Shown: in pieces, positions 12,262 through 60,497 of the stretch
Layout: each line of letters begins with the position of its first letter
How positions within the stretch are numbered: position 1 is the first letter of the stretch
Source: Paragordius varius
Taxonomy: Eukaryota; Animalia; Nematomorpha
Length of the DNA stretch: 64,000 bases
Direction of reading: 5' to 3'
Assembly (NCBI GenBank): GCA_964247055.1
Contig: OZ176059.1
Location: 1,736,001 to 1,800,000, forward strand
The notes under the pieces: model-generated
What the model saw: only the letters and a program-made list of their open reading frames with translations
Database searches by the model: none
Told to the model about the DNA's origin: nothing
Program-made: the position numbers and the translations under genes

Positions 12262-13746
12262 CTAATAAACAGGTATATAAGGGCGACGAGTAGTAATTGG
12301 TGGTCTTCGAGTCGTTCTACGAGTTGGATACCTTGTTCGACGAGTAGGAGGTCGAGTAGGTCTAGTACGCCTCGTTACAGGTGGCGGATTACATTCACAC
12401 AGCGGGCAACCGAACTCATCCAAAACATTTCCATATTCACAGAATATAAGGCAAACTGGTCCACACGTTGGTCTATAAACTAAACGAAAAAATGGAAAAA
12501 TGTATAAAATGTACAGTAAGAATCGAAAAATGTAAAGAAATTGAAATTGAAGTAGTAACGTTGGTCTATAATCTAAATGAATAAATAGTAAATAACACTA
12601 AAGAATCGATATAAATTTTTTTAGAGATTTAGTAAGGTTTTTTTATAAACTAAACGAAAAAATGGAAAAATGTATAAAATGTACAGTAAGAATCAAAAAA
12701 TGTAATGAATTTTCGAAATTATAAGTTTTTTTTATAATTTAAAAGAATGAGTAAATAGTAATAAAGAATTTTCGAAATTTAGTAAATTTTTTATATAATC
12801 TAAACGAATAAGTAAAAAATGCAAAGAAAAAGTACAGTAAGAATCGAAAAATGTAAAGAGTTTCCGAAATTTAATAAGGTGTTTTTATGAACTAAATACG
12901 CGAAAGAAAAAGTACACTAAAGAATTGAAAGATGTAAAGAAATTGAAGTCGTATTTTTTGAAAAAAGAATTAAATAAAGTCCGGTGATGAAATAAAATTT
13001 TTCTAAGATAATGACATTAATATTACCCTGATTTTTATGCCATTAATATATTAATGGGAAATGGTTTAAGCAGTTTTCAGTCGATTAGAGTTTAATACTT
13101 CAACGCTTTTGAAAAAAGAGAAGGATGTGAAAATGTTAAATATTTAAAAGCTTAGCAGGCATATTTGATAAAATAAATTAAGCAGAAAACTATTTAAAAA
13201 AACAAAAAAGGAGTATTTTTAACGGATAACCGAAATTTTATCATTGTGCAGACGATATGTACACGCAATTACTATAATAAAATATATTTTATTTATAATT
13301 TGGGCAAAAATATATTGATAAAAAAAATTTATATTAATTTATATTTAAGTTTGACAATGACTTGTAGTGTAATCGAAAATTCACTTTAATAAATCCATAT
13401 AATTATTGCTGAATTATAATAAATCCCATTACAAATTTTATAAAAATTAAGATTAGAGATGGAAATTTTTATAAAAAGTAACGAATAGAGATAGAAATTA
13501 TTAAATACACTCAATCATATTATTTTAAATTGTAATATGGGTATGCAAGAAATATCAAGTTTTTAAAATAATTTTGCGTTAATTAATCTGTATCTTTTGT
13601 TTGTTTGATTACAATTAATTTTAACTAAAATTTAAACTAAATTATAATTTTTTAAAGTCAAAGTTAATTTATATATCTAAACTTGTTCGGGCCGTTATAG
13701 AATTGGCAGCAAGAACCAGGAAAAAAATAATCAAGATATTCCGCAT
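12262..13746 (-). CDS. Secreted antistasin-family peptide, 93 aa; exon 1 13746-13683, exon 2 12479-12262
   Basis: Translation MRNILIIFFLVLAANSITART-I-YRPTCGPVCLIFCEYGNVLDEFGCPLCECNPPPVTRRTRPTRPPTRRTRYPTRRTTRRPPITTRRPYIPVY*. Hydrophobic signal-peptide-like exon; GT donor (13682) and AG acceptor (12481-12480) in matching phase 1; six-Cys CxxxCxxxCxxGxxxDxxGCxxCxC antistasin pattern; both exons are GC-rich islands. Confidence 0.8.
12480..12960 (-). repeat. Tandem duplications of the acceptor region of the antistasin-like gene
   Basis: Units such as ctataaactaaacgaaaaaatggaaaaatgtataaaatgtacagtaagaatcgaaaaatgtaaag recur about 5 times; cgttggtctataa (exon start) is repeated at ~12559. Confidence 0.75.
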
Positions 13747-14829
13747 ATTTAGGATTTTTTGAAAGGATTTTTATTGCACTGGTGAAGAGAAAAATAGGAA
13801 TAGAAAAGGTTTTAAACAATCAGTTGTTTTTTAAAGTTTATAATTATTCTTTGCAAGAAAAATATTAAATAAGAGAACAAAATAATTTTTTTGATGTACA
13901 ATTAACAGTAAGTCAGTCCTTTATATACCTTTTCAGCATGTTAAAAACGGTCAAAAAAGGTCAAAAACTTTTAAAAGTTGATAATTGGTTAATTTGAATA
14001 TGTCGCGACATAGGTTAAAACCTATTTAATTCTTCTTTTTTTCGTTCAATTTAAAATTTAACCGTGCCTCTGGTTTTTTAATTGAGTTACTTTTTAACAG
14101 AGAAAAATTTAAATACCAAAGTTTTTTTGAAAAAAAGTATCCTTTGGAAAGGTCAAAACCAATTAACAAGTCTAATTATAATAAGTTTTAAAATATAATT
14201 TATATTTTATATTAAGGTAACCAATTTAGTATCCATTTATATTATAAAATATATCTCATAAAACTATTAAAATAAATGTTTTATACTAAAAACTTTAAAG
14301 AGACTGATGAAAATTATTACCCGAATTCTTTAATCAAATTTAATTTACAGTAAAAATGAAATTATACGGTTAAAACGTGTAAATATAAAGACAAATATTT
14401 TTTTCTAAAAGACAACCCCATATAGTCCTAATTTTTTTTAAAAATAAAACTCTCATTGTTTTAAAGCAGGAAATAAAGATATAAATTGATTAAACAACAA
14501 GCAATTTATGTAGTATTTGAATTGTATTTAAATTATTTTAATTGAATGAATTTTAAGGTTTAAAAAAGTATCATAGAAAAATGTGTCTATATATTTTTAC
14601 ACCCGCTGTCATAGTTGAAAAGGCGCCTGTCAGAATTTTTTAAAAAATTTTAATTTTGTTTTTAAAAAAATAGGTATACAAAGTTATATATGTATTATAT
14701 TAAATAATACATAATGATATTACCCATTTTTATGAGTGGTCTCATAACCAAGTAGTTTAAATTTGATCATTTCTTTAAAATCAAGCAAAGGAATGCTTGG
14801 ATGGAAAATAAGGCGCCATCACGAATAAT

Positions 14830-16860
14830 TCACCCTTGAACAGAATTCAAATTCACCCTTATAGCCTTTAAATTCACCCTTGAACATCAAAATCACCCTT
14901 AAACCATTTAAATTTATCCTTAAAAAATCAAAATCATCCAAGTTTACCCTTGAATAGAATTAAAATTCACCCTTAAACCATATAAATTGATCATCCTCAC
15001 AAAATTTAAAATCACCCTTAAATCATTTAAATTCACCCTTTAACAGAATTCAAATTCACCCCTATAGCCTTTAAATTCACCCTTGAACAGAATTCAAATT
15101 CACCCTTAAACCATTTAAATTTATCCTTAAAAAAATCAAAATCATCCAAGTTTACCCTTGAATAGAATTAAAATTCACCCTTAAACCATATAAATTGATC
15201 GTACTCACAAAATTGAAAATCACCCTTGAACGATTCAATATCACCCCTTGAACGATTCCAATTCAACTTATTAAACACTTCAAACTCACCCCCTTGAACT
15301 ATTCAAAATCTCCCTTAAACCATTTAAATTCACCCTTAAATCATTTAAATTCACCCTTGAATAGAATTTAAATTTACCCTAAAACAATTTAAAACCACCT
15401 TTAACCATTTAAATTTACCATTTAAATAATTTAAATTCACCCTTGAACAGGATTCAAAATCATCCTAATATCATTTAAATTTATCCTCAAAAAATCAAAA
15501 TCATTCAATTGTACCCTTAAATAGAATTAAAACTCACCCTTAAACCATATAAATTTATCCTCACAAAATTTAAAATTACCCTTGAATAATTCAAATTGAC
15601 CCTCACAGAATTCAAAATCATACTTAAACAATTCAAAATCACCCCTTAAACCATTTAAATTCACCCTTGAACAAAATTCAAACTCACCCCCTTAAACACT
15701 TCAAAATCACCCTTAAACTATTCAAAATCCCCCTTGAACCATTTAAATTCACCCTTGAACCATTCAAAACCCCTCTTAAATCATTTAAATTCACCCTTGA
15801 TCCATTTAAATTCACCCTTTAACAATTCAATTCACCCTTAAACCATATGAATTTATCCTAACAAAATTTAAAATCACCCTTAAACCATTTAAATTTATCC
15901 TCAGAAAATTCAAAATCCCCCTAATTTAAAATGACCCTCACAAAATTTAAATTCACCCTTAAACCATTTAAATTTACCCTTAAACTGAATTCAAAATCAC
16001 CATTAAACCAAAATCACCCTTGAACAGAATTTTTATTCACCCTTGAACCATTTAAATTTACCCTTAAATTTAAATTCACCCTTGAACTGAATTCATCCCT
16101 TAAACCATTTATATTTATCCTCAGAAAATTTAAAATCACCCTTGAACAATTCAAATTTACCCTTAAACAATTCAAAATCACCCACAATCAAATTTATCTA
16201 ACAGTCTTTGAACTTAACCTTAAACCATTTAAAATCACCCTGAACAATTTAAAATCTCTCTTAAACCATTTAAATTTATCCTCACAAAATTCAAATCACC
16301 CCTGAACAATTCAAATTTATCCTCAAAAAATTCGAAATCACCCTTGAAAAATTCAAGTTTACCCTTAAATAGAATTAAAACTCACCCTTTAACCATATAA
16401 ATTCATCCTCACAAAATTCAAATTTACCCTTAAAGCCTTTAAATTCACCCGTGAACAGAATTTTATATCACCCTTAAATTTAAATTTACCCTCAAAAAAT
16501 TCAAAATCACCCTTAAACCATTCAAATTTACCCTTAAACCATTTAAAACCACCCTTAAATAATTCAAATTCACCGTTAAACCATTTAAATTTAGCCTCAT
16601 GGAATTCAACATCACCCTTAAACAATATCCTTGAAATAATTCTCCATCAATCAAAATATATGTTGTTTAAGATTAAAAAATGTTTTTATATAATTTTAAA
16701 TGATATAAATTTTGTTTTAAATTAAAATAATACTAAAAAAATAATAAATTATGTCGTAAAATATATGTCAGATGAATGATGAGTATATTAGCACCCCAAA
16801 AACATATAATTTATTTTTAGGGGGAATATTAATTTATACAAAGGTAAAATTAAACTCTAT
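14830..16860. repeat. ~21-bp minisatellite (AAATTCACCCTTAAACAATTC-like, 14830-16640) forming the expanded arm of a family F foldback element
   Basis: Dozens of degenerate ~21-23 bp units, followed by the family F core (aataataaattatgtc..tgatgagt..atattagc) that is also seen at 44100-44280 and 58420-58610. Confidence 0.85.
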
Positions 16861-19333: not shown

Positions 19334-20113
19334 ATGGAAGTTGATTTGAATAAACGATCTAAAACCGGAAAGTTACTGAGGAATTATGAAATTAGTAAAG
19401 GAATCATGAGATATTCCAAATCTGCCATATTTCATCGAAGACGTCTTTTTGAAGATGGGGTTGTTCATAGTTCTCGACGTAAAGCTGATTGGGCTAAGCA
19501 TCAACAAAAGCTGAAGGAAAAAACTGAAGCTGAGCAGAAAAAAGTGGTCAAAAAACCGATTGGCGGAGAAAAAAATGGGAAAGAACGCGTTATTCAAAAG
19601 AAACAGGTTTTTTACATCAAAATTAATGATTATTATACTTTGCTTGATTTTTTATACATTCGTTTAATTATACTTTATTCTGTTACCTATTCACATATTT
19701 ACGAACCTCTTTGTCCAACTTTATTCCATTCAAATTTTGTAACCAATTTTTTAATCTTTTTTTTATCGCTATTACAAGTTTGTTAAAAACAACTTAGAAA
19801 GAAATTTAAAATATATTGTTTTATTATAATAAAAATGGATTTATTAATGAATTTCATTTCTATTTTCCCCTATTTATCAATACAAAATGTTAAATTCTAG
19901 GAATTTTTAAACTATTCTTTTGCCGGATAAGACAAAATTATTTGTTTAAAATTATTTTTTTCTTTTTGTAATCACTTTAAACAAAAAAAATTTTACATTA
20001 TTTTTTTATAAAAATAAATTTAATTTTATTAACATTATTAATATTATCTAATTCTTTCTGAAAAATCATTTTCACTCCAAATTAAAAATTAGAAACTATA
20101 TGATTTTTTTAGT

Positions 20114-20151
<38 letters not shown>

Positions 20152-23100
20152 CTTTTGATAAAATAACTTATTATTTTTTTACAATTAATTTTTATAAAAA
20201 AAAATTTAAAATTAAGAAACCATTTTAAAGTATAAAATATATGGTTTTTTACAATTGATATATATATATATATATTATATTTATTATATTTACTTTTGTA
20301 TAATAACTCATATTTATTTTATTAATATTTTTTTAAAAAATCAATTAATTTATATTAATATTTTTAAAATTTAATTTTATTAATATTATTAAAAAATTTT
20401 TATAAATATTATTTTTTAGCCACGTTCAATATCAACCGCACTGAAAAAGACGAATTACATGAAAAGACTTAATCGAAAAAAATCTCAAATCAAGAAATTC
20501 AAACCTCTAAGATCATCTCTGATTCCTGGGAAGATTTTAATTGTTTTGGCTGGTCCGTATCGCGGAAAAGTTAGTTTTTTACAGTTTTTTTTGAAAAATA
20601 AGTTTAAAGGTAATTTTTTTAAGGCAGTTTTAAAATTTATTTGTAGAATGAATTTTATAAAAAATTCAAAAAATGGTTAAAAACTATAAAATTAAAAAAA
20701 AATGGTTTAGAACTATAAAATTTGATAAAAAGGTCCCTATCGAGGAAAAGTTAGTTTGCTTAAGTTTTTTTTGTAAAATGTTTAAAGTTAATTTTATCAA
20801 AAAAGTTCAAAATTTATCTTTATATTGATATAAAATTCAAAAAAATTGGTTTAAAACTATAAATTTGATAAAAAGAAACAAATTGAAACTTTCAAGATTT
20901 TTACAAGATTCCTGGAAAGATTTTGATTGTTTTGGCTGGTGCGTATCGCGGAAAAGTTAGTTTTTTTTTTGAAAAAGTTTATGAAAAAGTTTAAAAATTT
21001 ATCTTAATTTAACTAAAATTGAAGAAATTATCTTAATTATTAAAAAATCTAAAAAATTATCTTAATTATTAAAAAATTCCAAAAAATTGTTTAAAACTAT
21101 AAAATTTGATAAAAAGGTCCGTATCGCGGGAAAGTTAGTTTTTAAACTTTTTTTTAAATTTGAAAAAATTCAAAATTTATCTTAATTTTTTAAATATTTC
21201 CAAAAAATGGTTTAAAACTATAAAATTTGATAAAAAAAGAAGAAATTTAAACCTTTAAGATCATCTCTGATTCCTGGAAAGATTTTAATTGTTCTGGTTG
21301 GTCCGTATCGCGGAAAAATTTGTTTTTTTAACTTTTTGTGTATGTGAAAAAAGTGTTTAAAAAGGTAATTTTAGCAAAAAATTGATTTTATTATTATACT
21401 ATAAAATTTGGAAAATATATATATATATATATATATATTGATTTTTTTAGAAAAAAATTAATTTCTAACTAATACCTAATTTTTTTTTCATAAGATTTTA
21501 ATTAATTCCCTTTTTGGACATTTTAAGATTAAGAAAAAAAAACCAAAAAAATTACCCTCCTATATTTTTTTACAATAAAATAAAAATATAAATGGTTAAT
21601 TATTGTTCGGCACTGCAAAATTTTGCTATAGATGGGGCCTTTAAGGAAAAGAGGGGGCGCTTTTTTTCGTGGTATAAAAAGGCGTTTTCAATATCTATAT
21701 ATATATATATATATATACCATTTTTAGTTCAAATTCACCTTTAAAAGAATTTAAATTCACCCTTAAACAATTCAAATTCAATCAATTAATAAATTATGAA
21801 GTTTCGGTTTGATATAACTAACTCATCATTATAAATATGAAATATATCTTTATGGAAAAGTTTATTATTTTTTCAGTATAATTTTGATTATATACAAAGT
21901 TTCTTTTTTTGAAAATATAAAAAAGGTAATTTTTAATCTTAAAAATTACTTAATCTATTTTAGGGTGAATTCGGATTGTTTGAAGGTGAATTTGAATTGT
22001 TTAAGGGTGAATTTGAACTGTAAATGGTATATAATCATTTTATGTAAAAATACCGCCCTCTATTAAGTTGAACAATAAACACGACAACAGTAGTGTATGT
22101 AAAAAAACGAATTTTTCCATAGTAGTGGGAATCAGTAAACCATGGTCATTTAAAAAAACAGCTGTTTTTTGAAAAAATTGCTGGTAATTTTTTGTCGAAC
22201 AGAAATAATAAAATTTTATTGTTTTCAACTAATATATTTTTTTAAAAAATATAAATTAAATGTTTAATGTTTAAATATGCTTTTTTAACAATATATTGTT
22301 AAACATGCATCGTTATAACATTAGATTTAACAGTTATTTCTGAAAACCAAAACAATATTAAGCACTTTGCAAAACCATATGCAATTATTGCATATATGTG
22401 AACCGCCAATATTTTGAAAAAACACATTTTATAAATGGATATTTCAATAACGAAAGAAACTATAGATTAAATTTTATTTGAAATATCCAGTAGTAATTAA
22501 AGTTCCATGTATTTTAAGATTTAAAAAAATTTATTTAAACACAAAATTGTTGATTGATTTAAAATATTTGTAAATAATAATTACTATTAAAAAAATCTAA
22601 ACTTTTTAGAAAAAACTTGACAAAATTAGTGAAACAAACGCAAGTGTTGTACGAGAACATTATTTTCACAATTTAATAAATATCGCATGATATACCATTT
22701 ACAATTCAAATTCACTCTAAAAATAAATTATGAAATTTTAGACAGCTAATATAACTCATCATTATGATTTAATATATCTTTATGGCAAAGATTATTATTA
22801 CCTTTCAGTATTATTTAAATTTAAAACAAATTTATATATTTTTTAAAAAATATATAAGTAATTTTTAATCTTAAATAACATGATTTTATTTGAGGGTGAA
22901 TCTAAATTGTTCGAGGGTGAATTTCCAATGTTCAAGGGTGTGAATATTAATTGTTTAAGGGTAAATTTGAATAATTCAAGGTTTAATTACAATTATTCAA
23001 GGTTGTTTAAGGATTAATTTTAATTGTACGAGAGTAAATTTTAATTATTCAAGGGTGAATTTCAATTATTCAAATTTATATATGAATATTTATACCCTTT

Positions 23101-25456
23101 CCTTAATTATAAACTAAAATAATTTTAATTTATTCCTTGATAACATTATTAACCAATATTTGAATTTTTTTTCAACACTTTTTATACTTTTAGCGGGTCG
23201 TATTCCTAGATCGCCTGCCCTCAGGATTATTACTTATAACCGGTCCTTACCGGCTTAACGGGTGTCCACTACGTCGGGTTCATCCTACCCGGGTTATAGC
23301 TACCACGGAACATATACCCGGTTTTGAGCGATCAGCTGTTTTTAGCGGTATTTTTAGCGGTCCCGATCAGCTGACCGAATCAGCTGATGCTGAACGAGCC
23401 TTTTTCATGAGACGCGGAGGGGGAAACATGAAAAAGACAAAAGCCAATAAAGTTAAACAAGAAGAAGATATCTTTGAAACAGCTGATGGAAAAAAGGTCA
23501 GTTATAGCGGAAAGCTTTTTAAGGTTTTAAGAAATTTAATGAGTTTAAAGAAAAAAAAGTTTTGGGAATTTTTTTTTGATTTTTTTAGGAAATTTAAAGA
23601 TTTTTTAGTCATAAATATAAGAGACTGTTTTTAGGAAATTTTTATTTAGATATTTAGCTATAATTTTTTGATTTATAAGAGCGTTTTTTAAGAAATATAG
23701 TTTTTTTATGTAATTTTAAAGATTTTTTGATTTAGTAACTATAAGAGAGCATTTTTTAAGAAATTTAAAGATTGATTAAATAATTTTTGATTTAGTAACT
23801 TTAAGAGAGCGTTTTTTAAGAAATTTAAATTTTTTGATTTAGTAAATATAAGATAGCGTTTTTTAAGGAATTTTAATTGATTAAACATTTTTTAGTTTTT
23901 ATACATAAAGATTGGTTTTTAAGAAATATAGTTTTTTATGAAATTTAAAAGATTTTTTGATTTAGTAACTATAAGAGAGCGTTTTTAAGAAATTTAAATT
24001 AAATCCAAATTTTAAAGATGTTTTAGTAATATTAAATAGATTGCGATCAATTTTAGAATAATCAAGAATCATTTTTCAAAAAAAATGATTTATATCTTTG
24101 AAACAGCTGATGGAAAAAAGGTCAGTTATAGCGGAAAGCTTTTTTAAAAATTTAATGAGTGGGGGGGGGGAATTTAGATTTTTAGTTATAATTTTTTGAT
24201 TTAGTAACTATGAGAGAGCGTATTTTAAAAAATTAAGATTTGATAGTTTTAAAAGTTTTTTACGAAAATTAGAATTTTAGCTATAATTTTTTAATTTAGT
24301 AAATAAAGGGAGCATTTTTCTAAGAAATTTAAATTTTTTAAAGATTTTTTAGTTTTTATAGATAAGTGAGCGTTTTTTAAGAATTTTTAAAGATTTTATA
24401 GTATAAATATAAGTGAGCGTTTTTTAAGAAATTTAGAGATTTTTTAGTTTTTTGGGTTTTTTGATTTAGTAACTATAAGAGAGCGTAAGAAATTTAAATT
24501 GATTAAACATTTTTAGTATGCATAAATAAAGATTGGTTTATATTTTACCTTATTATATTTATAAAAAAAATGTAAACTTTTAAGAGTAAGATTTATTTTA
24601 AACGATGGAATTGAATTACGATATTTTTAACACTCCAGGTGTTAATAAAAAAAGATTAGTTATTTGGGAAATTTTTAAGAAATTTAATAAGTTTAGGAAT
24701 ATTATAAACAAATTTAAATGGTTTTTTGATTTTTTTAAGACAGGAAGAATTATGTAGTTGATATATATATATATATATATTTAATTTTGTTTTATTTAGT
24801 TATATTTTGATTATATTATATTATGAGAATTATATAATTTTTAATAATAAAGATTTATTTAAATTAAAGTTGGAATAATATATGTGAGGGGTTGATTATT
24901 TTAGGAAATTTTTTTAGGAATCATGAATTTAGAAATTTTATAAACAATTAATTTAAATGGTTGATTTTTTTAAGACAGAAAGAATTATATTATTTGTTAA
25001 ATTTAGTTATATTTTGATATATATTATATGTTTCATAACTTAAATTTTTTAATAAAAATTCATTAAATAGGTTGGAATACTATATATAAGGTGTTGATTA
25101 TTTAGAAAATTTTATTTTTAGGAATCATGAGTTTACTTTTGTTATTTTAAAATTTATGACAATTGTCTATATTATATTTTAGTCGACAATTTTTTTAAAA
25201 AAATTATAAAATTTTAAATAATTATAAATATAATTAACTTTTTATCGAAACTTTTTTATTTTATTCATACACACAGAATAAGGAACCGCTCCCAGAAGCC
25301 AGAAAAGAAATTCAAAAAGCTATCGATAACCGAATCTTAGATCTTATAAATGGCGCTATAACTGAAAACCCTTTGGATAGTCAATTTTTAAAGCGGTATC
25401 TTAGCTTACCATTTGCCCTAAAGAGTGGACAATACCCACATACCATGGTCTTTTGA
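19334..25456 (+). CDS. RPL6: 60S ribosomal protein L6 (eL6), 301 aa; exons 19334-19606, 20420-20569, 23194-23496, 25277-25456
   Basis: Spliced motifs [21 protein letters not shown]|[29 protein letters not shown] and the C-terminal [19 protein letters not shown]; all introns GT-AG, phase 0. Confidence 0.92.
20570..21330 (+). repeat. Tandem duplications of the RPL6 exon 2 3' end plus donor (echoes at 20732-20749, 20908-20955, 21116-21133, 21240-21317)
   Basis: GGTCC.TATCG.GG.AAA|GTTAGT and the following intron sequence (..ggtttaaaactataaaatttgataaaaa) recur four times. Confidence 0.9.
21718..22027. mobile_element. Family F foldback MITE (TA|CCATTT..AAATGG|TA); further copies 22695-23075, 33109-33370, 36375-36850, 40700-41004, 43890-44378, 58368-58643, 61800-62105; isolated reverse arms 35165-35265, 58015-58138
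   Basis: Inverted arms are built from AAATTCACCCTT(A/G)AACAATTC units around a shared AT-rich core; TA on both sides at 33109/33370. Confidence 0.75.
22130..22695. mobile_element. Internal fragment of the element at 45522-46459
   Basis: Collinear similarity to 45845-46365 (gctgttttttgaaaaaattgctggtaa ... gaacattattttca..aatatcgcatg). Confidence 0.7.
23497..24560 (+). repeat. Tandem repeats at the start of RPL6 intron 3, including one echo of the exon 3 end plus donor (24093-24145)
   Basis: Unit tttttgatttagtaactataagagagcgttttttaagaaattt recurs more than 10 times; atctttgaaacagctgatggaaaaaag|gtcagttatagcggaaagc is repeated at 24094. Confidence 0.85.
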
Positions 25457-27036
25457 AATTTGAATGGAAATTGAAAATTTTGAATTCTTATGAAAAAATT
25501 TGGAATAAAATTAATAAATACTTTAATTAATTGCATAATTTGATGAATATTGTTGGTTTTTATGTGTTTTTGATAAAAACTGCAAAATTTTGAATAATTT
25601 TCGTATTTTATTGGTTTTGATGTGTTTTTCGTTAAAAAACTGCAAATTTGAAACACTTTTTCTTATTAGAAAATTAATAAATACTTTAACTAATTGCATA
25701 ATTTGATGAATGTTATTGGTTTTAAAGTGTTTTTGAAAAAAAATTGCAAAATTTAGAATAATTTTCGAATTTTATTGGTTTTGATGTGTTTTTGATAAAA
25801 AAACTGTAAAATTTTGAATAATTTTTTTTTTATTAAAATATTAATCAATACTTTATCTAATTACATAAATATTTGATGAATTTTATTGGTTTTGAGTATT
25901 TTTTGAATGATCATTTATGAAATCATAGCATGGTTTTTTTAAAAATTGAAAGGAAATTGAAAAATAAATAAACATTTTGAAAAAAATTAATAAATACTTT
26001 AACTAATTGCATACATAAATAACTAATGTATTGGTATTTATGTGTTTTTTGAATGATTTTTTTCTGTTAAAATTGACAGATTTTTTTCACATTAGAAAAT
26101 TAATAAATATAACTTTATAAATATCTATTTTATATTATATATATATATATATATAATTTTATTGGTTTTGATGTGTTTTTTGAATATCTGATTAAAATTG
26201 ACAGATTTTTTACCTTGAGCGGTTTAAATTTTAGACTTTCGTGAAAAACTGCAAAATTTTGAATATATTTATTATTTAACCTTTTATTTTCCAGGGTATT
26301 TAAATAAATCTTATAAATGGCGCTATAACTGAAAATCCCATGGATAGTCAATTTTTAAAGCGTTATCTTAGCTTACCATTTGCCCTTAAAAATGGACAAT
26401 ACCCACATGCCATGGTTTTTTAAAATTGAAGAAATGGAAAACTTTGAATAATTTTTTTTCTTAATTAGAAAATTTTGAATAATAAATGAAAATTTTGAAA
26501 AAATTGAATAAATACTACTATGTAATTGCATAATTTAATTAATTTGATTGGTTTTGAAAGTGTTTTTATGTGTTATTTAAATGATTTTTATAAAATCATA
26601 GCATTGTCTTTTAGAATTGAATGGAAAATTTTGAATTCCTATGAGAAATTTTTGAATAATTAATAAATACTTTATCTAATTGCATAATTTGATGAATTTT
26701 ATTGGTTTTGAAGTGTTTTTGATAAAAAACTGCAATTTTAATAATTTTAAATAAAATTAATAAATACTATTAATGTATAAATAACTAATGATATATATAA
26801 TTTGATTAATTTTATTGGTTTTGAAGTGTTTTGATGTGTTTTTAAAAAATTGCAAAATTTTGAATTCCTATGAGAAATTTTGAATATTTTTTTTTTCATT
26901 AAAATATTAATCAATACTTTAACTAATTGTATAATTTGATGAATTTTAATGGTTTTGATGTGTTTTCGAATGATTTTTTCTTAAAATAGACATTTTTTTA
27001 CATTAGAAAATCAATAAATATAACTTTATAAATATC

Positions 27037-27043
<7 letters not shown>

Positions 27044-27095
<52 letters not shown>
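27044..27095. repeat. (TA)n microsatellite; others at ~3529-3567, 16858-16879, 20117-20150, 41004-41030, 45077-45120, 60500-60553, 62108-62138
   Basis: Pure TA runs are directly visible. Confidence 0.95.
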
Positions 27096-27096
<1 letters not shown>

Positions 27097-29234
27097 TTCG
27101 ATTAATTTTATTGGTTTCAAAGTGTTTTTTGAATATTTTTGCTTAAAATTGACAATTTTTTACTCTTAGCGGTTGTAATTTAGCGTTTTCGTTAAAGAAT
27201 AAATGAAAATTTTAAATAATTTTGAATAAATTTACTTATATAATTTTTTTTTCTTAAATTAAAAATTAAAAACTGAAAAATCAGATAGTCAATTTTTAAA
27301 GCGTTACCTTAGCTTACCATTTGCCCTAAAAAATGGTCAATAACCACATACCATGGCTAAAATGGAAAAAACGGAAAATTTTGAATTCCTATGAGAAAAT
27401 TTTGAAAAACTAATAAATACTTTAACTAATTACATAGTTTTATTGGTTTTGATGAATTTTATTGGTTTTGAATGATTTCCTTTTAAGTGGTTTAAAATTT
27501 AGGCTTTTTCTGTCAAAAAATGAAAATTTTTAATATTTTATTAATATAAAATCCTTTTTTTCTTAAGTCAAATATTTAAAACTGAAAATGCATTAGATAG
27601 TCAATTTTTAAAGCGTTATCTTAGCTACCATTTGCCCTAAAAAATGGTCAATTCCCACATACCATGGTCTTTTAAAAATGAAAACGGAAAATTTTGATTA
27701 ATTTTGAATTCCTATGAGAAAATTTTGAATATTTTTGAATAAAATTAATAAATATATCATTATATATATGTATATACAAAAAATGATGAATTTTATTGGT
27801 TTTGAAGTGTTTTGATGTGTTATTTAAATGATTTTTTATGAAATCATAGCATGGTCTTTTAAAAATAAAACTGCAAAATTTTAGAAATGAATGGAAAATT
27901 TTGAATAAAATTAATAAATACTTTAACTAATTGCATAATTTAATGAATTTTATTGGTTTTGATGTGTTTTTTGAATGATTTTTTATGAAATCATAGCATG
28001 GTCTTTTCAAATTGAACGGAAAATTTTAAAAACTGCAAAATTTTGAATAATTTTTATTAAAATATTAATAAATACTTTTATTGCATAATTTGATGAATTA
28101 TATTGGTTTTTAAGTGTTTTTTGATATCTGCTTATAATCATAAACATGGTCTTTTAAATTCAAGAAATGGAAAATTTTGAAATCCACTAAAAATTAATAA
28201 ATATACTATCTAATTGGATAATTTGATGGATTTTAATGGTTTTGAGGTGTTTTGATGTGTTTTTTGATAAAAAACTGCAAAATTTTGAATAATTTTCGAA
28301 TTTTATTGGTTTTGATGTGTTTTTGGTAAAAAATTGCAAAATTTTGAATAATTTTTAAATTTTTTTGGTTTTGAAGTGTTTTTGAAATTTTTCTGTTTAA
28401 AATTGACATTTTTTACCTTGAACGGTTTAAATTTTAGGCTTTTTCTCATATATGAAAAACAAATATTTTAATAAATTTATTATTTAACCTTCTATTTTTC
28501 CAGAGTGTTTAAATAAATGTTTTAAATTTAAATAAAACTAAAAATAAATCCATTAGATAGTTAATTTTTAAAGCGTTATCTTAGCTTACCATTTGCCCTA
28601 AGAAATGGGCAATATCCACATAACATGGTTTTTTGAAATTGAATGGAAAATTTGAATTCCTATTAGAAAATTTTGAATAAATAAATTTTGAATAAAATTA
28701 ATAAATCCTTTAACTAATTACATAGTTTTATTGGTTTTAAAGTGTTTTTATGTGTTTTTTGAATGATTTTTTATGAAATCATAACATGGTCTTTTAAAAT
28801 TGAATGGAAAATTTTGAATTCCTATGAGAAAATTTTGAATTAAATAATAAATACTTTAACTGTTTGCAGATATAATTTGATAAATTTTATTGGTTTTGAT
28901 CATAACATGGTCTTTTGAAATTGAAAAATAAATGAAAATTTTGAATAATTTTGAATAAAATTAATAAATACTTTAACTAATTGCATAATTTGATTAAATA
29001 TATTGGTTTTGATGTGTTTTTGAAAAAAACTGCAAAATTTTGAATGATTTTTATGAAATCATATAGTCTTTAAAAATTGATTGGATATTGAAAAATAAAT
29101 GAAAATTTTGAATAAATTAATAAATTATTGTATAATTTGATGAATATTATTGGTTTTGAAGTGTTTTAATGTGTTTTTAATAAAAAACTGCAAAATTTTG
29201 AATAATTTTTCTCATTAGAAAATTAATAAATTCC

Positions 29235-29266
<32 letters not shown>

Positions 29267-32427: not shown

Positions 32428-32458
<31 letters not shown>

Positions 32459-41003: not shown

Positions 41004-41035
<32 letters not shown>

Positions 41036-43169: not shown

Positions 43170-44963
43170 ATTGAATAAGGTTAATTTAGCGTTTTTAAGC
43201 AAAAAAATGTGTAATTTTAAAGTTGATTTATATCAAGTAGGAAATATTTGCGTATAAAAGAGTGGTGACAGATGTTATTATTTTGGATAAATGATGATGT
43301 GTTTAAAATTAAAATATTTGTGGATCAAAGAATTATATACAAATATAATTGAATATATATTTTATGGTTAATTGTAAGTGGACGCAAGGTTAATAGATTA
43401 TTTGAGAATTAAAAAATTTTTGTGACTTCTATACACGAGAATATTTTATGTAGACTCAATTTTAAGTTATAAAAACTATCCTTATTCTAGAAAACTTTTA
43501 TAAAATATTCGAACGTCAGGAGCATTGAAGTATATAGAAAGTTTTATAATATTTTTAAGTCCGTTTGCACTATTTAAAATACAATATTAAGTTTAGAAAA
43601 ATTGCCAAATTTAAACACCTTATGACCATTTAGGGTAATTTATATCCTTAAGCGATTTAAATTTGATTTAGAAAAGCATTCAGGATATTTCCAAAATTAA
43701 AAAAGCTTTTGCGATGCAAAATAAAAAAATTGTAACATTCTATTACATTTACATTTTTTTGTAACCAATTAAATTTTGGGAGAATTTTATATGACAGAAC
43801 TATAACTCATAGAAGTTCTGTTAAAAAGCTATTTTACTTAATTTTAATTAACAAAGCCTCTTGGGATATGTAACCAGATAAAATATATACATCATTTACA
43901 GAATTCACCCTTTAATATTCAAATTCATGCTTAAACAATTAAAATTCACCCTTAAACAATTTAAATTCACCTTTAAACAATTTATATTCACCTTTAAACA
44001 CTTTAAATTCACCCTTAAACAATTAAAATTTACCCTTAAACAACTTAAATTCACCCTCGAGTAATTCAAATTAACTTTCAAATTAAATTAATCCTGAAAT
44101 TAATTATGTGTTCTTTAAAATTAAAAATTACCTGTATTTTTTCATACATATATATAAAATGAATTTTTGTATAAAATTAATATAATATTTATAAAATAAT
44201 AAATTATGTCAGAATATATTTTATATTAACGATGAGTTATATTAGCTGCCCAAAACAGATAATTTATTTTTAGGGGAGAATTCGAATTGTTCAAGGGTGA
44301 ATTTGAATTGTTTAAGGGTGAATTTGAATTGTCCGAGGGTGAATATGAATTGTTCAAGGGTATTTGAATTGTAATTGGTATATATATTGGGTCGGGTGAT
44401 AAAAATTTTTTTTTGACTTGACTTGCAAGTTTTTCAAGTCATGGCTTGCTTTCATGCGATAAAAAAAATTTAACATTACACGACTTAAGTCAAGCAAGAA
44501 AACTTGATAAGGAGGTGAGAAAAATCATATGTTCAAGTAAATTTAAAGATTTTGCAAGTGTGGTGTAGGGCACACTTGACAGATTTTAAAATACGGATAA
44601 AATTATTTTGGAAACTATTTATATACAAAATTTAGGTTTTATATGTAATTCAATCCTTTATTAATGCTATAAATAGTTAATTTGATAATTTTAGGCTAAT
44701 TAATCTATTCATTGGGTGGATACAAAAGAGGATAAATTTATAGTAAGACTCTGCTAATATAAATAACATGGCACATAAAAATATGCTAAATATATCAATT
44801 CCTTGACTGGAAAAAAAATTGGATTCTCGAAAATTTCTCAATAATAATTAGATATTAATCTTGTAAAATTTCAAATCTTCGTTTATTAAAAGCAAAACTT
44901 CACTTTTATCCAATGTAAGGAATTTATTTCATCATAAATTTATTTCGAATGTAATGTTTATAA

Positions 44964-45071
44964 TAATGTGACCAGATAGGCTGTTTTTCGCAGTACAGTA
45001 CTGGGTTTTCAGAAAAAAACTGCGCCAGTACTGCGTCCAATTTTGTACTGCTTTTGAAATTAAAAAATTTA

Positions 45072-45123
<52 letters not shown>

Positions 45124-49081: not shown

Positions 49082-49168
49082 ATAGTGATGTAAAATATCG
49101 GCATTAGTTTAGAAAAACAAAATTTTATTTAGATTATGTGGTTATTTATATCAAATAAGACACACTAA

Positions 49169-52667: not shown

Positions 52668-55600
52668 ATGAAAACCGAAACTACGGGGGAAGCTTTACCT
52701 TCCAACCCTAACACCAATGATAATAACAGCATCAATGCAAGGAATAGCAATAATTCGAATGCTTCTAAACGGCGGCGTGTAAATTCACCGTATGAACCCA
52801 TTTTAGGTATAATGTTTCTATGTTTTGATTTTAAATTTGATTATAGTCCATTAGATGATTTTTTTTGAAATTAACCATACTTTGATGAAAAGTTTTACCT
52901 AATTGTGTGATTTTAAAACTTAAATTTAACGCTTTTAAATCTAAAACTTTAAACTCATAATAAACCTCTCAAATATGCAATATAAGCTTTATGTAAGTTT
53001 TTCACCGCTATTTATCTCGACAGATTGGAACATTTTGAATCATTTGGAAAATGATTTGCCCGATGAATTGATGAACAGCAGCAGTATCAGTACCAGTAAC
53101 AATAATGTCACGTCAAATAACCCTATCGACACGAATGACAAGGTATCGTTGCTTATGGCAACACAGAAGCAACAAACCCAACACCACGGCGGCGGCAACA
53201 TCAATCAGCTGTTGCCGCCTCTCTCAAATGGCGTGGGTGCACTGGCTTGTGAATCATCCGATGCCCAAAAGAACCCGCAACTTGCTCAGCTGTTGAATCA
53301 AAGTCCGTTAGCTTCATCGTTTCACAGTCCCCCGTTAACGGGTATAATAATCCCGGATCCCCATGCTGTTCCCAACCCTTATAGCCGTCCCAACGTAGTT
53401 ACCAACACTAACAACAATAATAATAGCCATAGCCAATTACTAAACATTGGCATAGGTAATAGTAGTAATAATCCTCTCTCAACAGCTGCTTCTGGTACAA
53501 TGGCAAGTAGTTTAGCAATTACGTCATCAGTGGAAACAAACATAAGCGCATTTAGCGGTAGCGGTCGACAACCGTCGCCTTTTTACCCGTTATTACACGG
53601 TGGGCCTCCTCCACAGCCCAAAACGACCGTCGCCGGCGTTGGCAACTCCGCTGATGGCGGCGGTATTAGCAGTTACAATAAACATCATCATGTGACATCA
53701 TCGCTATCGTCTGCTGTAGGTACCGAAGGCTCATATCAACAACAACAACAACTAATTCATCACAACAATGTCCCATCAATGACTAATAATCCTAATAAGT
53801 TATTATCAAATACTGATGGTCAACACGTTTTGGGTGGTAGCATTTCTTCATCTCAAATTGACGTTACTTCCTCTTGTCCGACAGAGCCAGTAGGCGGATT
53901 CATGATGATGACAAATTCATCTTTACCACAACAATCAATTGGTTCTTCTTCTTTACAGCGATTCCTGGTAAAACATTATTTTGAACTTGTATTATATTTC
54001 AATTTGGAATTTTTTGCATATGATTTATTATATTTGATAGCAGACGAAATTATTTTTAATTTAAATATTGTGTATATGTTTTATTATATGTGAGCAGACG
54101 ATATAAGATTTCAAAACCGTTTTTTAAGTTGATAATTTTTTGGTGGCCATTTTATCTAGAAATTGGAGATTTAAAAATTGAATTCAGATAATGTTTATTG
54201 TGAATATGGACAAAAGTAATAGGTAAAATTTAATATTTAGATATTTTTGCTCATTCGATAATACCATAAAACCAAATGCTTTTGGTATAATTATTTATTT
54301 CATTTATGCAAAAATCTATTGAAAATTATTTGTTTAAAATTATAGATAGGTTTCCTATTCATAGATAATCATAAAACTAAACGTTTTAATTTTTTTAATT
54401 TTACAATTCTAAGGTTGTTTTAAAAAGAGTTAGCTTGAGCCTTTTGGTAAGCTATCAAAATTTGTTTGTCCTATATATCTTCAAGTTTTTTCCCATTACA
54501 AGCTTTTTAAAAAAATTCATTAACAAAATAATATTGCTATTTTATCATTCAATTTCATCAGAGTGCATATACAGTAAAGAATTTTTTTATTGGCTAATAT
54601 ACCCAGTAAAATATCCAAAATACAACTGTAAACCAATAATATTTGCCTTTACTGGATATGCTTTTTGGCAATTATTATTATTAATAATATTAATGAAAAA
54701 ATCTAACCAAATCCATATACTTTTTACTGTATTTTGAATCTCTATGTTAGAATCCATCAATGACAACAATGATGAGTGGAGGATTTATAGGATCAACATA
54801 TGATGCCGTTACCATGACAACAGGCAATGGCCAACAACTCTTTTATCCCTCTACGCATCAACGCGGCATCATTTCCGGTGTAAACGGAGCAGCCATTGGG
54901 TCAATGAACTCTTCCACTGCATTAACCTTAACTACGTCATCATCATTAGCGGCCGGGACAATTATCCCACCGCCAAACGTTCAAGTTATAACTACCTCAC
55001 CCATAATTATATCATCAGCCCTACATTCACAGCTGACCGCTACAGCGGTGCCCACATCGTTCCATAAGGTACACATTTTGTTTGATTATATATATGTCGA
55101 GCGGCATCGTTTTTGTTTGTTTCTTAATTAAACTTACAATAACCATCAACCAGTGGCATTACTGCATTTTGGCATATTTTTTTTCATATTATCATTATTG
55201 TAAACACTCATTTTGTCTTAATATTTATGACATGTATACATAAATTTTATTTAGCGGGGATTTAAAAATTTTTTTAAAAATATTTTTAAGCCTCACTGTT
55301 CCCCCTTAAAACAAAATTGTATGGAAACAAAACCAGAGTATTAAAATAATTAAGTTCTCATCTTAAATTCTAGTATATGTTCACTATTTTAAATTCATAC
55401 TTTCTTAAATCAGTATTCTTTAAACCTGCATTGCTATGTTATGATATAATATATATAATATAAAATAGGTATCACCCTACAATTACATGTATATAAACAA
55501 CAGCAATATTAACAACGTTAATAACGTTGCCATGGTAACCATTTATGATGGTACAAGTGCTATTGGCCCAACACACAGTTTTGTCACCAATATGATGACA

Positions 55601-58600
55601 TCAACAACGCAAAACTCTTCCACCCTTTTTGCAACAGCTGTTTCTACGTTACCATCATCAGCTACGGCGCCAACAGCTGTAGCGCCATCATCCCAATCCC
55701 AACAACATCACGTGGCATCAGCTGACCCCGAGAAACGAAAGTTGATTCAGCAACAACTCGTCCTCCTCCTCCATGCCCACAAGTGTCAAAAGAGGGAACA
55801 GATGTTCGCTGCCGCCATTGGCGGAACCGTTGCCAATAGCAACGACGAAACAGCTGCTGCTCGGGCACCCTCATGTACGTTACCACATTGCCGAACCATG
55901 AAAAATGTCTTGAATCATATGATGACGTGCACGGCTGGCAAGGCGTGTACAGGTAATTAATTACCTAACCTGGGTGTTATTTAAAATTACAATTGCATGT
56001 TAATTTACCCTTGAACATTTTAAGTTTTCTAATAATAAAATTAGATGTAGTTTTGTTATAAACTTAATATTTTTTCATTAACACGTTCTCGTACATAACT
56101 ATATTATTCATAATTTTACAAATTATTCTTAAAAAAAACTATTTTAAGAAGTATTTGTGAAAAATATTTGGTGCTATTAGTCTTTATACATTTTTTCATT
56201 TATACCATATTTTATATCATAATCCTTTATCTAATCATATCCGCAAACAGTTCCCCATTGTGCCTCATCACGGCAAATCATTACGCATTGGAAGAATTGT
56301 ACAAGGCTGGATTGCACTGTGTGCCTACCGCTAAAACGGCCGCCTGGAACCGCCGGTTCCGCTAACCCATCTCAATCTCAACAGCTGATTCAACCGCTAC
56401 AAAACCAATCACTAGGTATATATACATATATTTCATTTAAAACGGGTTTTAACGGATCAATTATTATTGTAAAAAATCATTTTAAACTATATGCATTTTC
56501 TTATTTTGTTAAATAAATATAATAACTTGAAAATGAATCGCTGGAAATTCAAATAATTGAATTAGGGTGTTTTATAGCTCATGGCAGATAAAAACTAATT
56601 TTTTAATTATATTATGATACAAAAAGGAGATAATGAAGAATTAGTTAATTTCTAAAATAAATATTTTCATAAAGGTTATTATTTAATATAATAATGTCTT
56701 AAATTATAGCTCTTCACCAAAAATATCTATCCCTTTCCTATATTATTTCATTATAAACACACTTATATAAAAAGAGAATAATGAATTTATAAGTGTTTAA
56801 TTTTTAAAACTTTTGTAATATTTCAACGCACATTTATTTTACGTTTTATTAAAACCTTGACAATGTCATCCTCTATCTCATCAATAGCAGATGTTGGAAT
56901 GAATGCATCATCCATGGTGATGATGCCAACAGCTGGGATGACCGCTAACAATAATGACAACAGTTATCCGCCACCCTTATCATCGATGGAAGCCGCCGGA
57001 GAAGCGACGGCTGGACCAATGGTGGGGATCATCCATTCTTCCCCATACTTTGTTTCCCCCCATCAACATCAACATATGCAACAACATCAACAGCAGCTGA
57101 GAAACATTCATTCACAGCAACAGGCACCACATAATCAGCTGATACAGCAGCCACCATCCCAACATTTGTTGTTGGCACCACAACAGTACGCCAACACAAA
57201 TATCAATAACAATACTCAGGTAGTAGGAGTATTTATGATAAACTATATATTATATTAGTTTTTTTCATTAACACTTCTTTACCACGCGCTTACCATATGT
57301 TTCTATTCATTTATGATGTAATTTTACTTGGCTGTATATAGTTAATAAAAGTGATGGAAATAAAAATTATTTAATCAAAATATTAATTTGACAAATTTTT
57401 TTTTTGAACTTATGAATAAAAAATTATCGAACTATACCAACGCAACATATATGCCTACACAATTCATATATTTTAACCGTTTTTTTTCCCTACAGGTTAT
57501 ATACAATGGCAATACACCTCCACCTGCTGGTACCATGGCTGGATATGGGTCACATTATTCCCAACAGCTGCAACATCCACAAAGTGGGGGCGCATATCTT
57601 CTCCCTTCGTCATCATCATCATCAGTTTCCATTGATGGCGCTATGATATCAGCTGGTCGCATTGATGGCCTTGTCAATGGCCAGCCACTATTATTTGGCG
57701 ACAACGCGACCATGAATACGCCGCCACCCCCTTATCCTCATCATCAACATCACCAACAGCTGATTGGATCATCAGCTGTTGGCGGTACGATGACGACACC
57801 TACACCGCTCAAAGCGGCAAACGCCACAACAACAAGAAGTCAACCACAAAGTTGGCATGCCCTAGTCACGGAAGATTTAAGGAGACATCTCGTTTTAAAA
57901 TTGTAAGCTGATTGATTGATTGATTTTATTTTTGTGTTTATAATACTTAATATTTTCAGTTTTTTTACTTTTTATCATGATATGTTGTTTTTTTAAAGTC
58001 AGCTTTTGGTGAGGTTAATTTGAATTGTTTAAGGGTGAATTTAAATTGTAAAGGGGAATATGAATTGTTCCTAGTCAATTGAATTGTTTAAGGGTGAATT
58101 CATAATTGTTTAAGGTTAAATTTCAATTTTGTAAATGGTATATATAATATATTTTTTATACTTTGTTAGAGTTCAAGCAATTTTCCCGACCCCTGATCCT
58201 ACATCCCTCCAGGATCGAAGAATGCAACATCTGGTGGCCTATGCCAAAAAGGTTGAAGGTGACATGTTTGAAAGTGCAAATAGTCGTGTAAGTCTTTTTT
58301 GTTTTTTATTTTATTTTAGTTACCTGAAAAATAATTTTTTTAAAACAATTTATTGATATTTTATATACCATTCATTTACAGTTCAAATTCACCCTTAATT
58401 CACCTTAAAAATAAATTATGTGTTTTTCTACGATCAAAAAATTATATTTATTTTTTTTTATTTTTTAACATATGAAATTTTTTTTAAAATTAATTGAACG
58501 CTGCAAAAAATAATAATAAACTATGTCGTAAAAATATATATTTCATATTAATGATGAGTTATATTAGCTGCCCGGAAACACAAAATATATACTTTTAGGG

Positions 58601-60497
58601 TGTGAATTTGGATTGTTCGAGGGTGAAATTGAATGTTTAATGGTATATATTATTGAAATGAAAAATATAAATTTTGCTAAATAAAAAAGTAATTAAATAT
58701 GATTGTTAACAATCTATCCACAAAATCTTTAAATTAAAACAATGTTTTACCAATTATAATATATAATTTATTTTTTTTATAAAAATAAAAATTTGTTAAA
58801 TTTGCTTGAAATTTATACCTACTCTATAAGAACATTATATGGTATATCTTTATAAAAAATTATTTTTTGCTAAATAAAAAAATATTAAAATATGGTTGCT
58901 AATAATTCATCCCTAAAATCTTTAAATTTAAACAAATGTTTTACCAATTAATTTTTTTTATAAAAATAAAAATTTGTGAAATTTGTTTGAAATTTTTTAC
59001 CTTACAGGAAGAGTATATGGTATATTATTTTTTAAATAAAAAAATATTTTTTGGCTAATTAAAAAAGTAATATAATATGGTTGTTAATAACTCATCTTAA
59101 CCAATTTATTTTTATAAAAATAAAAATTTGTAAATTTTATTTGAAATTTTTTTACCTTACAGGAAGAGTATTACCATTTGTTGGCGGAAAAAATTTACAA
59201 GATTCAAAAAGAGCTTGAAGAAAAACGTCATGAACGTCAACAAAGGGCCAAAGAACAGCTGCAACAACAACAACAGCTGCAACAGCAACAAACGAAAAAT
59301 ACGCCAAATTACAATGCGATATCACCTGTTTCGGTATCATCAGCTGTTTGGGGAACAGGTGAGTGTGTGTGTGTGAATGAATGTATGCGTATAAGTTTTT
59401 GAAATGTTGTTTTGGATAATTGTAGTGTTTTTATATCCTCCAAGAGTTTTAAAACAAATTATAAAATCTTTTAAATATAATAATGTTTAACACATTAATA
59501 ATGGTTTTATATGTATTTTTTTATAAAACACACTAAATTACAATGCGATATCACTTGTTTCGGTGTCACCAGCTCTGTTTGGGGAACATGTGAGTGTGTG
59601 ATTAAATGAATGAATGTATTCGTATAAGCTTTTGATATGTGTCATGTGTTTTTTGTGGGTTTATTGGTGCCTTTTTTATATGTTTTGAGAGAAATTAATG
59701 TTTTTTATCATTTACCATTCAAATACACTTTCAAACACTTTAATTCATATACAACATTATATATTTATCCTGAAAATAAATATATTTTGGGTTAATATTT
59801 AACTTGTTATTGATATGAAATAGTTCTTTATGGTGTATCATTTTCCTGGATTGTGGTACTTTTAAATAAATTTTCTGTGTAAAATAGCAAAAAATATATA
59901 GGTGGTTTTATAGTTTCATATACTTTAAATGAAAATGTTTAAGGTTCAATTTGAAATGTTCAGAGTTGGATTTAAGTTATAAATATGGATCACACAATTA
60001 ACATTTTTTTTGTAACGTTGTGTGCTTTTTTATCCTATGCGTTTTTAATTCCCTAGATTACTTATATTTTGTTTGTCTATACTGAAAATAACCATTTTTA
60101 CCTTTTATATAATCATCGTGCCCTAAAATAATTATATTTTTTTTGTTTTCAATCACACACATATTATAGATAAAACACCGCTAGGAAAATCCTATGTGGT
60201 GGATGCATCTCCCGCTATAGCGGAACAACCGCCACCGCCAGGATCCGTTATAACTGTATCATCTATTAACCCAAAAACACCTCAGATCTCTTCTTCTAAT
60301 ACTTTACCTATCATCAACAGCAGCACGCCCTCAGAATTTGGGGTTAATAATGGCCCCAATACCAATAACGATATAATTATTGCTCAATTAAGGTCTACCG
60401 GGGTGGCAAACAACTCCAACTTAAATTCCACGCTAAAATCCAATGTCAATAATAATTTGTTACAACAATCGAACCAAAATCAATTTATTGATTCTGT

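Follow-up and report, generated by a model that had tools for sequence, protein, structure and literature searches.

Tandem copies of exon edges and their splice sites in the non-coding DNA of four genes of the hairworm Paragordius varius

A 64,000-nucleotide stretch of the genome of the hairworm Paragordius varius (contig OZ176059.1 of assembly GCA_964247055.1, positions 1,736,001 to 1,800,000 of the forward strand; hereafter the window) raises the question of why the edges of its exons recur, with their splice sites or stop codon, in the adjoining non-coding DNA. The genome is very AT-rich, and the window, with 25% G+C, is dense in tandem repeats. A preliminary description, made from the sequence alone, had reported such copies at eight junctions and in all four intron-containing genes, RPL6, RPS5, CBP and an antistasin-like gene. 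We analyzed these copies, which we call echoes, for their anatomy, their presence in independent DNA, the splicing of the sites that they carry and the pattern of substitutions in their exon parts. The arrays are probably minisatellites of the type named “mirages” in amphioxus, that is, by-products of rampant local tandem duplication combined with a selective filter, with decoy splice sites that are ignored in splicing.

Exon edges are re-copied on the non-coding side at eight junctions

Gene identities come from a Pfam domain search of the proteins of the window, which upheld all the names given in the preliminary description. The genes that carry echoes are the following.

19334-25456, + strand: RPL6 gene (reading frames, GT/AG sites and open reading frames, ORFs; Pfam Ribosomal_L6e on E3 and E4)
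19334-19606, 20420-20569, 23194-23496 and 25271-25456, + strand: RPL6 exons E1, E2, E3 and E4, the last including the stop codon
43169-36215, - strand: RPS5 gene (Pfam Ribosomal_S7; 703-nt RNA contig of run X12)
43169-42810, 40659-40432 and 36283-36215, - strand: RPS5 exons E1, E2 and E3
about 52.6 kb to the end of the window, + strand: CBP gene (Pfam zf-TAZ and KIX)
59163-59358, + strand: CBP exon (ORF and splice sites; KIX and TAZ in neighboring exons), provisionally labeled “exon 9” in the preliminary description; the gene start may precede 52638
13745-12262, - strand: antistasin-like gene with two exons (Pfam Antistasin)
13745-13682, 12479-12265 and 12264-12262, - strand: antistasin-like exon 1 (signal peptide), exon 2 and stop codon

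Copies were located by direct reading, self-BLAST and iterative local alignment. Strong copies are present at six exon 3′ edges, namely those of RPL6 E2, E3 and E4 (on the stop side), RPS5 E1 and E2, and the CBP exon ending at 59358, and arrays also abut the acceptors of the same CBP exon and of antistasin-like exon 2. All copies sit on the non-coding side of their exon, and across the eight junctions the exon part of a copy ranges from 9 to 130 nt. The arrays are listed below, a slash marking the exon-intron boundary.

20570-21372, + strand: donor-side array of RPL6 E2 (self-BLAST, local alignment), 31% of intron 2; four echoes (20732-20840, 20877-20966, 21116-21158 and 21240-21372) carry 18 or 78 nt of the exon end, and three of them retain AAA/GTTAGT
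23497-24740, + strand: donor-side array of RPL6 E3 (self-BLAST, local alignment), 63% of intron 3; the single echo, 24092-24160, includes 29 exon nt without a difference from the real exon, and AAG/GTCAGT, and beyond it, up to 24740, the array repeats intron sequence only
25457-33714, + strand: stop-side array of RPL6 E4 (ORFs, self-BLAST, local alignment); five long copies (26305, 27271, 27577, 28546 and 30398) have 90-119 nt of coding end, the stop codon and downstream DNA, at least six copies are short (25924, 26597, 27845, 28780, 28901 and 30811), the copies span 25924-30887, and remnants at 32964 and 33669 reach 33714
41309-42809, - strand: donor-side array of RPS5 E1 (self-BLAST, local alignment; a contig of run X4, 42080-42820, reproduces part of it); five to six echoes start at 42661, 42517, 42331, 42126 and 41965, with a fragment at 41358, and CAG/GTTT is retained in four of five
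37369-40431, - strand: donor-side array of RPS5 E2 (self-BLAST, local alignment; contigs of runs X4 and X1 cover units); five echoes start at 40210, 39752, 39483, 38986 and 38464 (down to 38290), carry 75-130 nt of exon end and all retain AAG/GTAT, followed by intron-only units to about 37440
59525-59640, + strand: one donor-side echo of the CBP exon, with 63 nt of exon end and about 50 nt of intron, 85% identical, with CAT/GTGAGT
58640-59162, + strand: acceptor-side intron array of the CBP exon, with a period of about 181 nt; in the copy at 58940-59016 the polypyrimidine tract, the AG (within 59003-59016) and about 9 nt of exon are preserved
12480-12947, - strand: acceptor-side intron array of antistasin-like exon 2, units of about 60-150 nt; the nearest copy keeps the AG and about 14 nt of exon, and the acceptor echo at 12560-12580 retains AG

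To assess the chance level of such matches, 45-nt exon-only probes were aligned both to the 2.5 kb beside each edge and to 40 non-coding segments far from it. Probes of the six 3′ edges reach scores of 58-90 beside the exon and at most 26 in the distant segments, which serve as the null; together with self-BLAST and local alignment, this confirms that exon edges with their splice site or stop codon are re-copied on the non-coding side. The antistasin-like acceptor, with its ~14 nt of exon, lies weakly above the null (28 against a maximum of 18), and the acceptor-side copies of CBP were undetectable with these probes; they are intron repeats abutting the exon. The count of eight junctions thus stands for the six 3′ edges, whereas the two acceptor cases are real arrays with only ~9-15 nt of exon. 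The label “all four intron-containing genes” also holds, yet echoes are limited to 8 of about 38 exon edges, the strong ones all at 3′ edges, and the exon-only probes found none at about 30 other edges in the window.

Array-derived DNA, put at several kilobases in the preliminary description, amounts to 12.8 kb, about one fifth of the window. Within an affected intron or flank its share is 17-68%, the remainder being largely a 21-bp satellite and a transposase ORF. The echoes of RPS5 E2 begin at different exon positions in local alignment (99, 111, 112, 117 and 154), and those of RPL6 E2 start alternately at exon positions 133 and 73, within a higher-order unit of 385 bp. Identity between units is 67-87%, and the variants that they have in common form a mosaic. 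Such differing inner boundaries among diverged units of one array (70-87% identity in self-BLAST and local alignment) indicate several independent duplication events per junction, which bears out the earlier proposal of a recurrent junction-spanning duplication that expands introns.

Two further tandem arrays near splice sites, 53991-54114 and 20086-20413 (56-nt units, and 140-nt/25-nt units), are free of exon sequence. One starts 24 nt past a donor and the other stops 6 nt before an acceptor, such that both are neighbors of a junction, as the echoes are, but exon-free.

The arrays are real DNA, and RPS5 mRNA skips the decoy donors

We compared contigs of four public sequencing runs with positions 38250-43250 of the window. 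Runs X4 and X1 are DNA from two samples and run X12 behaves as RNA; no contig of run X7 (RNA, 2015-2017, labeled as this species) matched this interval. The arrays are real DNA: X4 and X1 contigs cross from unit to unit, and from the working exon E1 of RPS5 into its array (42080-42820 and 41043-42105). No contig spans a whole array, and differences between samples fall inside units (a 19-nt insertion at 38757, a 6-nt deletion at 38952 and AAT at 39449).

The window also departs from the short-read contigs by 1-nt and 3-nt indels (38433, 38985, 39449, 39493, 42331, 42333 and 42804) and by scattered bases. Some of these window-specific indels frameshift echoes. Whether variants private to the window or errors left over from assembly, the indels matter for frame-based analysis of this assembly.

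A 703-nt contig of X12 matches 43172-42810 and 40659-40431 without mismatch, and its remaining 111 nt read as exon 3, so that RPS5 E1, E2 and E3 are joined exactly. The X12 depth over both RPS5 echo arrays is zero. The dominant RPS5 mRNA uses the true donors and skips ten decoy donors. The preliminary description had proposed that the splicing machinery must ignore the decoys, use them recursively or use them for regulation; being ignored is what holds in the main RPS5 mRNA, and we found no evidence for recursive or regulatory use. The decoys are indeed intact, as claimed there, since 14 of the 16 donor echoes keep their GT. At a divergence of 13% the neutral expectation is 76% (p=0.39), and retention at this level points neither to selection that preserves the decoy sites nor to selection that removes them.

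We also considered that the copies might be tandem alternative (mutually exclusive) exons, and rejected this: the copies lack the 5′ part of the exon, the AGs at their starts are in the wrong phase and one RPS5 mRNA form is present.

Echoes are no more frequent than local tandem duplication

The preliminary description had further suggested a process aimed at exon junctions. Local direct repeats (within 3 kb) account for 36% of the window, for 57-77% of the RPL6 and RPS5 introns and for 11% of the CBP introns, and outside the echo arrays they still make up 24% of the non-coding DNA. Echoes occur at 21% of exon edges overall and at 32% of 3′ edges, against a coverage by local repeats of 24% outside the arrays and 36% overall, and their frequency per gene follows the repeat background (about 40% in RPL6 and RPS5, 10% in CBP). 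Given that echo frequency is not above this background, a junction-directed process is not needed, and that part of the earlier proposal, which was to fall if echoes proved no more frequent than tandem duplications at random intronic positions, is not supported. Nearly all non-satellite arrays inside these genes nevertheless start at an exon edge. When arrays, 21-bp satellite and transposon are removed, only ~100-450 bp are left of each intron, and where residual introns are this short, a duplication of 180-1000 bp that does no harm must in most cases reach into an exon at one end.

Based on these observations, we infer the following mechanism. The founding unit would be a small local duplication (~180 bp to 1 kb) whose breakpoints fell one in the exon and one in the non-coding DNA beside it, a pair that would be one of the few harmless options in short residual, presumably ancestral, introns. 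Selection would remove duplications that fall within exons or leave copies on the coding side, and later duplications and unequal exchange would lengthen the arrays and hence the introns, the copied donor sites being by-products. In RPS5 the decoys are probably ignored because a decoy donor has no upstream acceptor with which to define an exon. That strong echoes are confined to 3′ edges, and that the acceptor copies contain so little exon, would fit stronger selection against upstream decoy acceptors, which are transcribed and met first.

The arrays resemble the mirages of amphioxus

The name “mirages” was given, in the Adh3 gene of amphioxus, to tandem repeats that extend across an exon-intron border. 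Such repeats are also present in globin, troponin C and PGBD5 genes; their AG/GT are mostly retained, normal splicing is undisturbed, and they have been read as products of unequal exchange (PMC3087553, PMC3902484). The globins in question are BflGb6 and BflGb9, and both papers cite Canestro et al. 2002 (PMC3087553, PMC3902484). The claim that the present architecture is undescribed therefore does not hold, although its density here appears to be unpublished. As in amphioxus, the units span an exon-intron border (5′ or 3′), here at eight junctions, and carry the junction AG/GT, here as GT in 14 of 16 donor echoes and AG in the acceptor echoes; splicing is undisturbed, here for RPS5. In both, a unit measures from tens to a few hundred bp, except that units of up to ~1 kb occur here. 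Unlike the amphioxus arrays, those of the window are far denser, affecting 8 of ~38 exon edges and taking up a fifth of the 64 kb, and one of them lies past a stop codon. Whereas the inner units of BflGb6 are 81-100% identical, with concerted evolution, the units here are 13-30% diverged and thus much older or far less homogenized. The exon parts here also show a coding-type pattern of substitutions, which is not reported in PMC3087553 or PMC3902484.

The kind of array is known beyond this genome and lancelets. A protein search with RPS5 exon 2 returned no contigs of the same or a sister species, and found like arrays in an unrelated organism of 40% G+C (ENA ERZ27250121, ERZ27250106 and ERZ27250159; L001-L003). 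There, a homologous 228-nt RPS5 exon is followed by three to four donor echoes with a period of 69-71 nt (L001:466-780), and three acceptor echoes precede the last RPS5 exon (L001:1790-2048; also L002 and L003). The ORF called in that organism reads through exon, intron and echo. In the literature on hairworm genomes we found no description of such arrays. New features are how dense the arrays are in this genome, units of kilobase size and an array on the stop side.

A related process is the Rogers model, in which, as summarized in PMC3087553, introns are gained by tandem duplication of an exon segment containing AGGT. Both there and here, tandem duplication sets duplicate splice signals beside an exon. 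In contrast to that model, no new intron is formed here: the unrelated organism has the RPS5 intron in an identical position, after ...INAAK, which indicates that the duplications lengthen old introns.

Other systems share single features with the echoes. Silent cassettes that act as donors in gene conversion include the pseudo-V segments of chicken and the pilS or vls cassettes of bacteria. Like these, the echoes are promoterless, 5′-truncated copies beside an expressed copy, unexpressed, open and codon-clean (here with a ratio of non-synonymous to synonymous differences, pN/pS, of 0.11-0.24); unlike them, they belong to housekeeping genes without need for diversity and include intron sequence and splice donors, and conversion is here only hypothesized. 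Recursive splice sites, or ratchet points, occur in long introns of Drosophila and vertebrates, where AG/GT regenerates a donor after the first step. AG/GT is likewise found within long introns here, and the RPS5 E1 echoes have a pyrimidine tract, AG and GT; however, a usable AG with pyrimidine tract is present in some echoes only, and the sites arose by copying of the junction itself.

Exon parts of the echoes are conserved at the codon level

Several observations weigh against the view of the arrays as by-products of duplication. The RNA evidence concerns RPS5 only and comes from assembled contigs, which drop rare isoforms. Strong echoes are found at 6 of 19 3′ edges and at none of 19 5′ edges (p=0.02), a bias that the selective filter would explain, by inference only. 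Above all, the exon parts of the echoes are cleaner at the codon level than this view predicts. Summed over copies, echo and working exon differ at 5.0%, 5.8% and 17.3% of codon positions 1, 2 and 3, such that positions 1 and 2 differ about three times less than position 3, and the adjoining intron parts of the echoes show 13% differences. Among distinct substitutions, 56 of 98 are synonymous, compared with 25% expected from the spectrum of the intron parts (p=7e-12); this also exceeds a generous null of 40% (p=4.5e-4). RPS5 E2 alone has 19 synonymous and 7 non-synonymous substitutions. No counted substitution is common to all the echoes that cover its site, indicating that the changes occurred on echo lineages and not on that of the working exon. 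Compared with one another, the echoes have pN/pS of 0.11 in RPS5 E2, 0.19 in RPS5 E1 and 0.24 in RPL6 E4, with a proportion of synonymous differences (pS) of 0.24-0.30, while a pure by-product model expects a ratio of non-synonymous to synonymous substitution rates (dN/dS) of 0.5-1. The codon-level cleanness of the exon parts is not explained by tandem duplication and a selective filter.

Not every echo behaves in this manner, as the RPL6 E2 echo at 20877 looks neutral (dN/dS ~1). Third-position changes run from G/C to A/T more often than in the reverse direction (34 versus 16). In RPL6 E4, the G+C content of third positions (GC3) falls from ~0.31 to 0.12-0.23 in the echoes, and that of positions 1 and 2 is unchanged at 0.37-0.40, a pattern resembling neutral drift of third positions within the echoes while the first and second are held in place. 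Of the seven non-synonymous changes in the RPS5 E2 echoes, four occur in the window only, and so do the deletion of one codon and an insertion of 1 nt that shifts the frame; in other samples the residue is that of the working exon and the silent states are those of the echo. Changes that vary between sources are mostly non-synonymous (9, versus 4 synonymous) and those common to all are mostly synonymous (17, versus 3 non-synonymous; Fisher p=0.003), a contrast that draws on the best-supported variants of short contigs that may lie on the wrong copy, and in which private changes may be assembly errors. No gradient of age is apparent: the most distal RPS5 E2 echo is nearest in sequence to the working exon (pS 0.06; 87% over 197 nt), and the echo that lies nearest to the exon is the most different from it.

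Simple accounts of this pattern failed. If each echo were a frozen copy that then decayed neutrally, dN/dS should be at least 0.5 (0.5 against the exon, 0.5-1 between echoes), and 0.04-0.26 is observed. Two-way gene conversion or unequal crossing-over, combined with selection on the exon, was rejected by reasoning, given that a silent divergence of ~0.3 among units makes exchange about as rare as mutation, which is too rare for the exon's selection to be passed on to the echoes. An artefact of base composition or mutation spectrum was also rejected, since the spectrum of the intron parts still yields 25% synonymous and 31% third-position changes.

Alternative explanations

One model survives the codon numbers, and on the whole we regard it as unlikely: the echoes would be one-way sequence donors, that is, silent cassettes, for the end of the working exon at a break-prone junction. 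Sloppy repair would make the duplications, and accurate repair would copy short tracts of echo into the exon end. An echo with a changed amino acid would then keep seeding defective ribosomal-protein alleles and be selected against, while, never being overwritten itself, it would keep its silent differences; repair of this kind, in germ line or soma, would make the arrays a stock of nearby templates for essential genes as well as the scars that those breaks left. This model accommodates echo lineages that are constrained at the amino-acid level despite high silent divergence (pS ~0.24-0.30), the drift to A/T at the third but not the other positions of RPL6 E4, the mostly non-synonymous between-sample variants and mostly synonymous fixed ones of RPS5 E2, the repeated start of new duplications in the same exon end and the lack of an age gradient. 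Against it, among the variants listed for the working RPS5 exons (one RNA contig and two DNA samples, a small sample) none is an echo-derived silent variant. The neutral-looking RPL6 E2 echo does not fit it either, and the between-sample contrast that it accommodates carries the uncertainties of contig placement and of window-private changes given above. Clean codons could instead have been inherited, each echo having been copied recently, through unequal crossing-over, from a different and strongly diverged working allele or sister lineage. The mosaic of silent variants among RPS5 E2 echoes is as in recombining haplotypes, and many of the non-synonymous changes and indels of echoes are private to one source, and so young. 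This account, however, needs working alleles ~25-30% apart at silent sites, and the RNA contig is identical over 703 nt, with contigs of the two DNA samples differing from the window by only ~0-2%. Three silent sites, moreover, have three states, requiring at least three to four such lineages, and the low GC3 of the RPL6 E4 echoes speaks of long neutral residence as echoes and not of recent working alleles. We consider it improbable, and more so than one-way donation.

A role of the decoys in splicing, either as recursive (ratchet) sites for stepwise intron removal or as regulated alternative sites, is very improbable. Donor echoes of exons ending in AG do recreate AG/GT, those of RPS5 E1 also have a pyrimidine-rich stretch and CTAAC just upstream, and a recursive step of zero length would be invisible in the mature mRNA. 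On the other hand, the RPL6 E2 echoes read AAA/GT, without AG, those of RPS5 E2 and RPL6 E3 are purine-rich upstream of the AG, and no echo offers an in-frame alternative exon in phase with the upstream donor. X12 contains a single RPS5 isoform with zero depth over the arrays, and splicing use would not yield conservation specific to codon positions. That assembly stacked haplotypes or reads in tandem is hardly credible. The several 1-nt indels and single bases by which the window differs from short-read contigs do point to local errors or private variants, but contigs of two samples cross the borders between units and join exon E1 of RPS5 to its array, the units are cut at different points and 13-30% diverged, unlike stacked haplotypes, and a like structure is present in another organism in three separate assemblies.

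Other features of the window

The remaining genes and repeats of the window are as follows.

6345-6884: intronless ARL1-like GTPase gene (Pfam)
31451-32086, - strand: transposase ORF of DDE_Tnp_4, PIF/Harbinger-type, 212 aa open (Pfam, E=4e-22)
14827-16626, 36381-36793, 40708-40946, 43902-44372, 58013-58128, 61793-61890 and others, both strands: blocks of the 21-bp satellite

The first codons of the ARL1-like gene (6349-6371) have an imperfect 21-23-nt copy at 6172-6193, ~170 nt upstream of the start, which scores 30 against a null maximum of 21 and may be a small 5′ echo or chance. The transposase ORF falls inside the span of the array downstream of RPL6. The protein of the antistasin-like gene is secreted, with a signal peptide, a single antistasin domain and a long Arg/Pro/Thr-rich tail in exon 2 (12265-12479, - strand).

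The 21-bp satellite, with a unit close to AATTCACCCTTAAACAATTCA, is present on both strands and also in the introns of RPL6, RPS5 and CBP. Its contig word depth reaches 1e5-1e6 in the DNA runs, which makes it a major component of the genome. One short motif (ACCATTTACA) borders several of its blocks, suggesting spread on a mobile element. An Rfam scan of the whole window matched no family, and the array units are without snoRNAs or the like.

Implications

If the density seen in this window holds genome-wide, introns of this organism would be growing mainly by copying their own borders, a concrete and datable route of expansion, and thousands of intact decoys would constitute a natural experiment on how true splice sites are chosen. 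Gene finders will be misled by the decoy splice sites. The codon-clean echoes are the part that specialists would not expect, as DNA that is spliced out or lies downstream of a gene behaves as if its amino-acid meaning counted, and they call for either a novel form of exchange between exon and echo or a use that has gone unrecognized.

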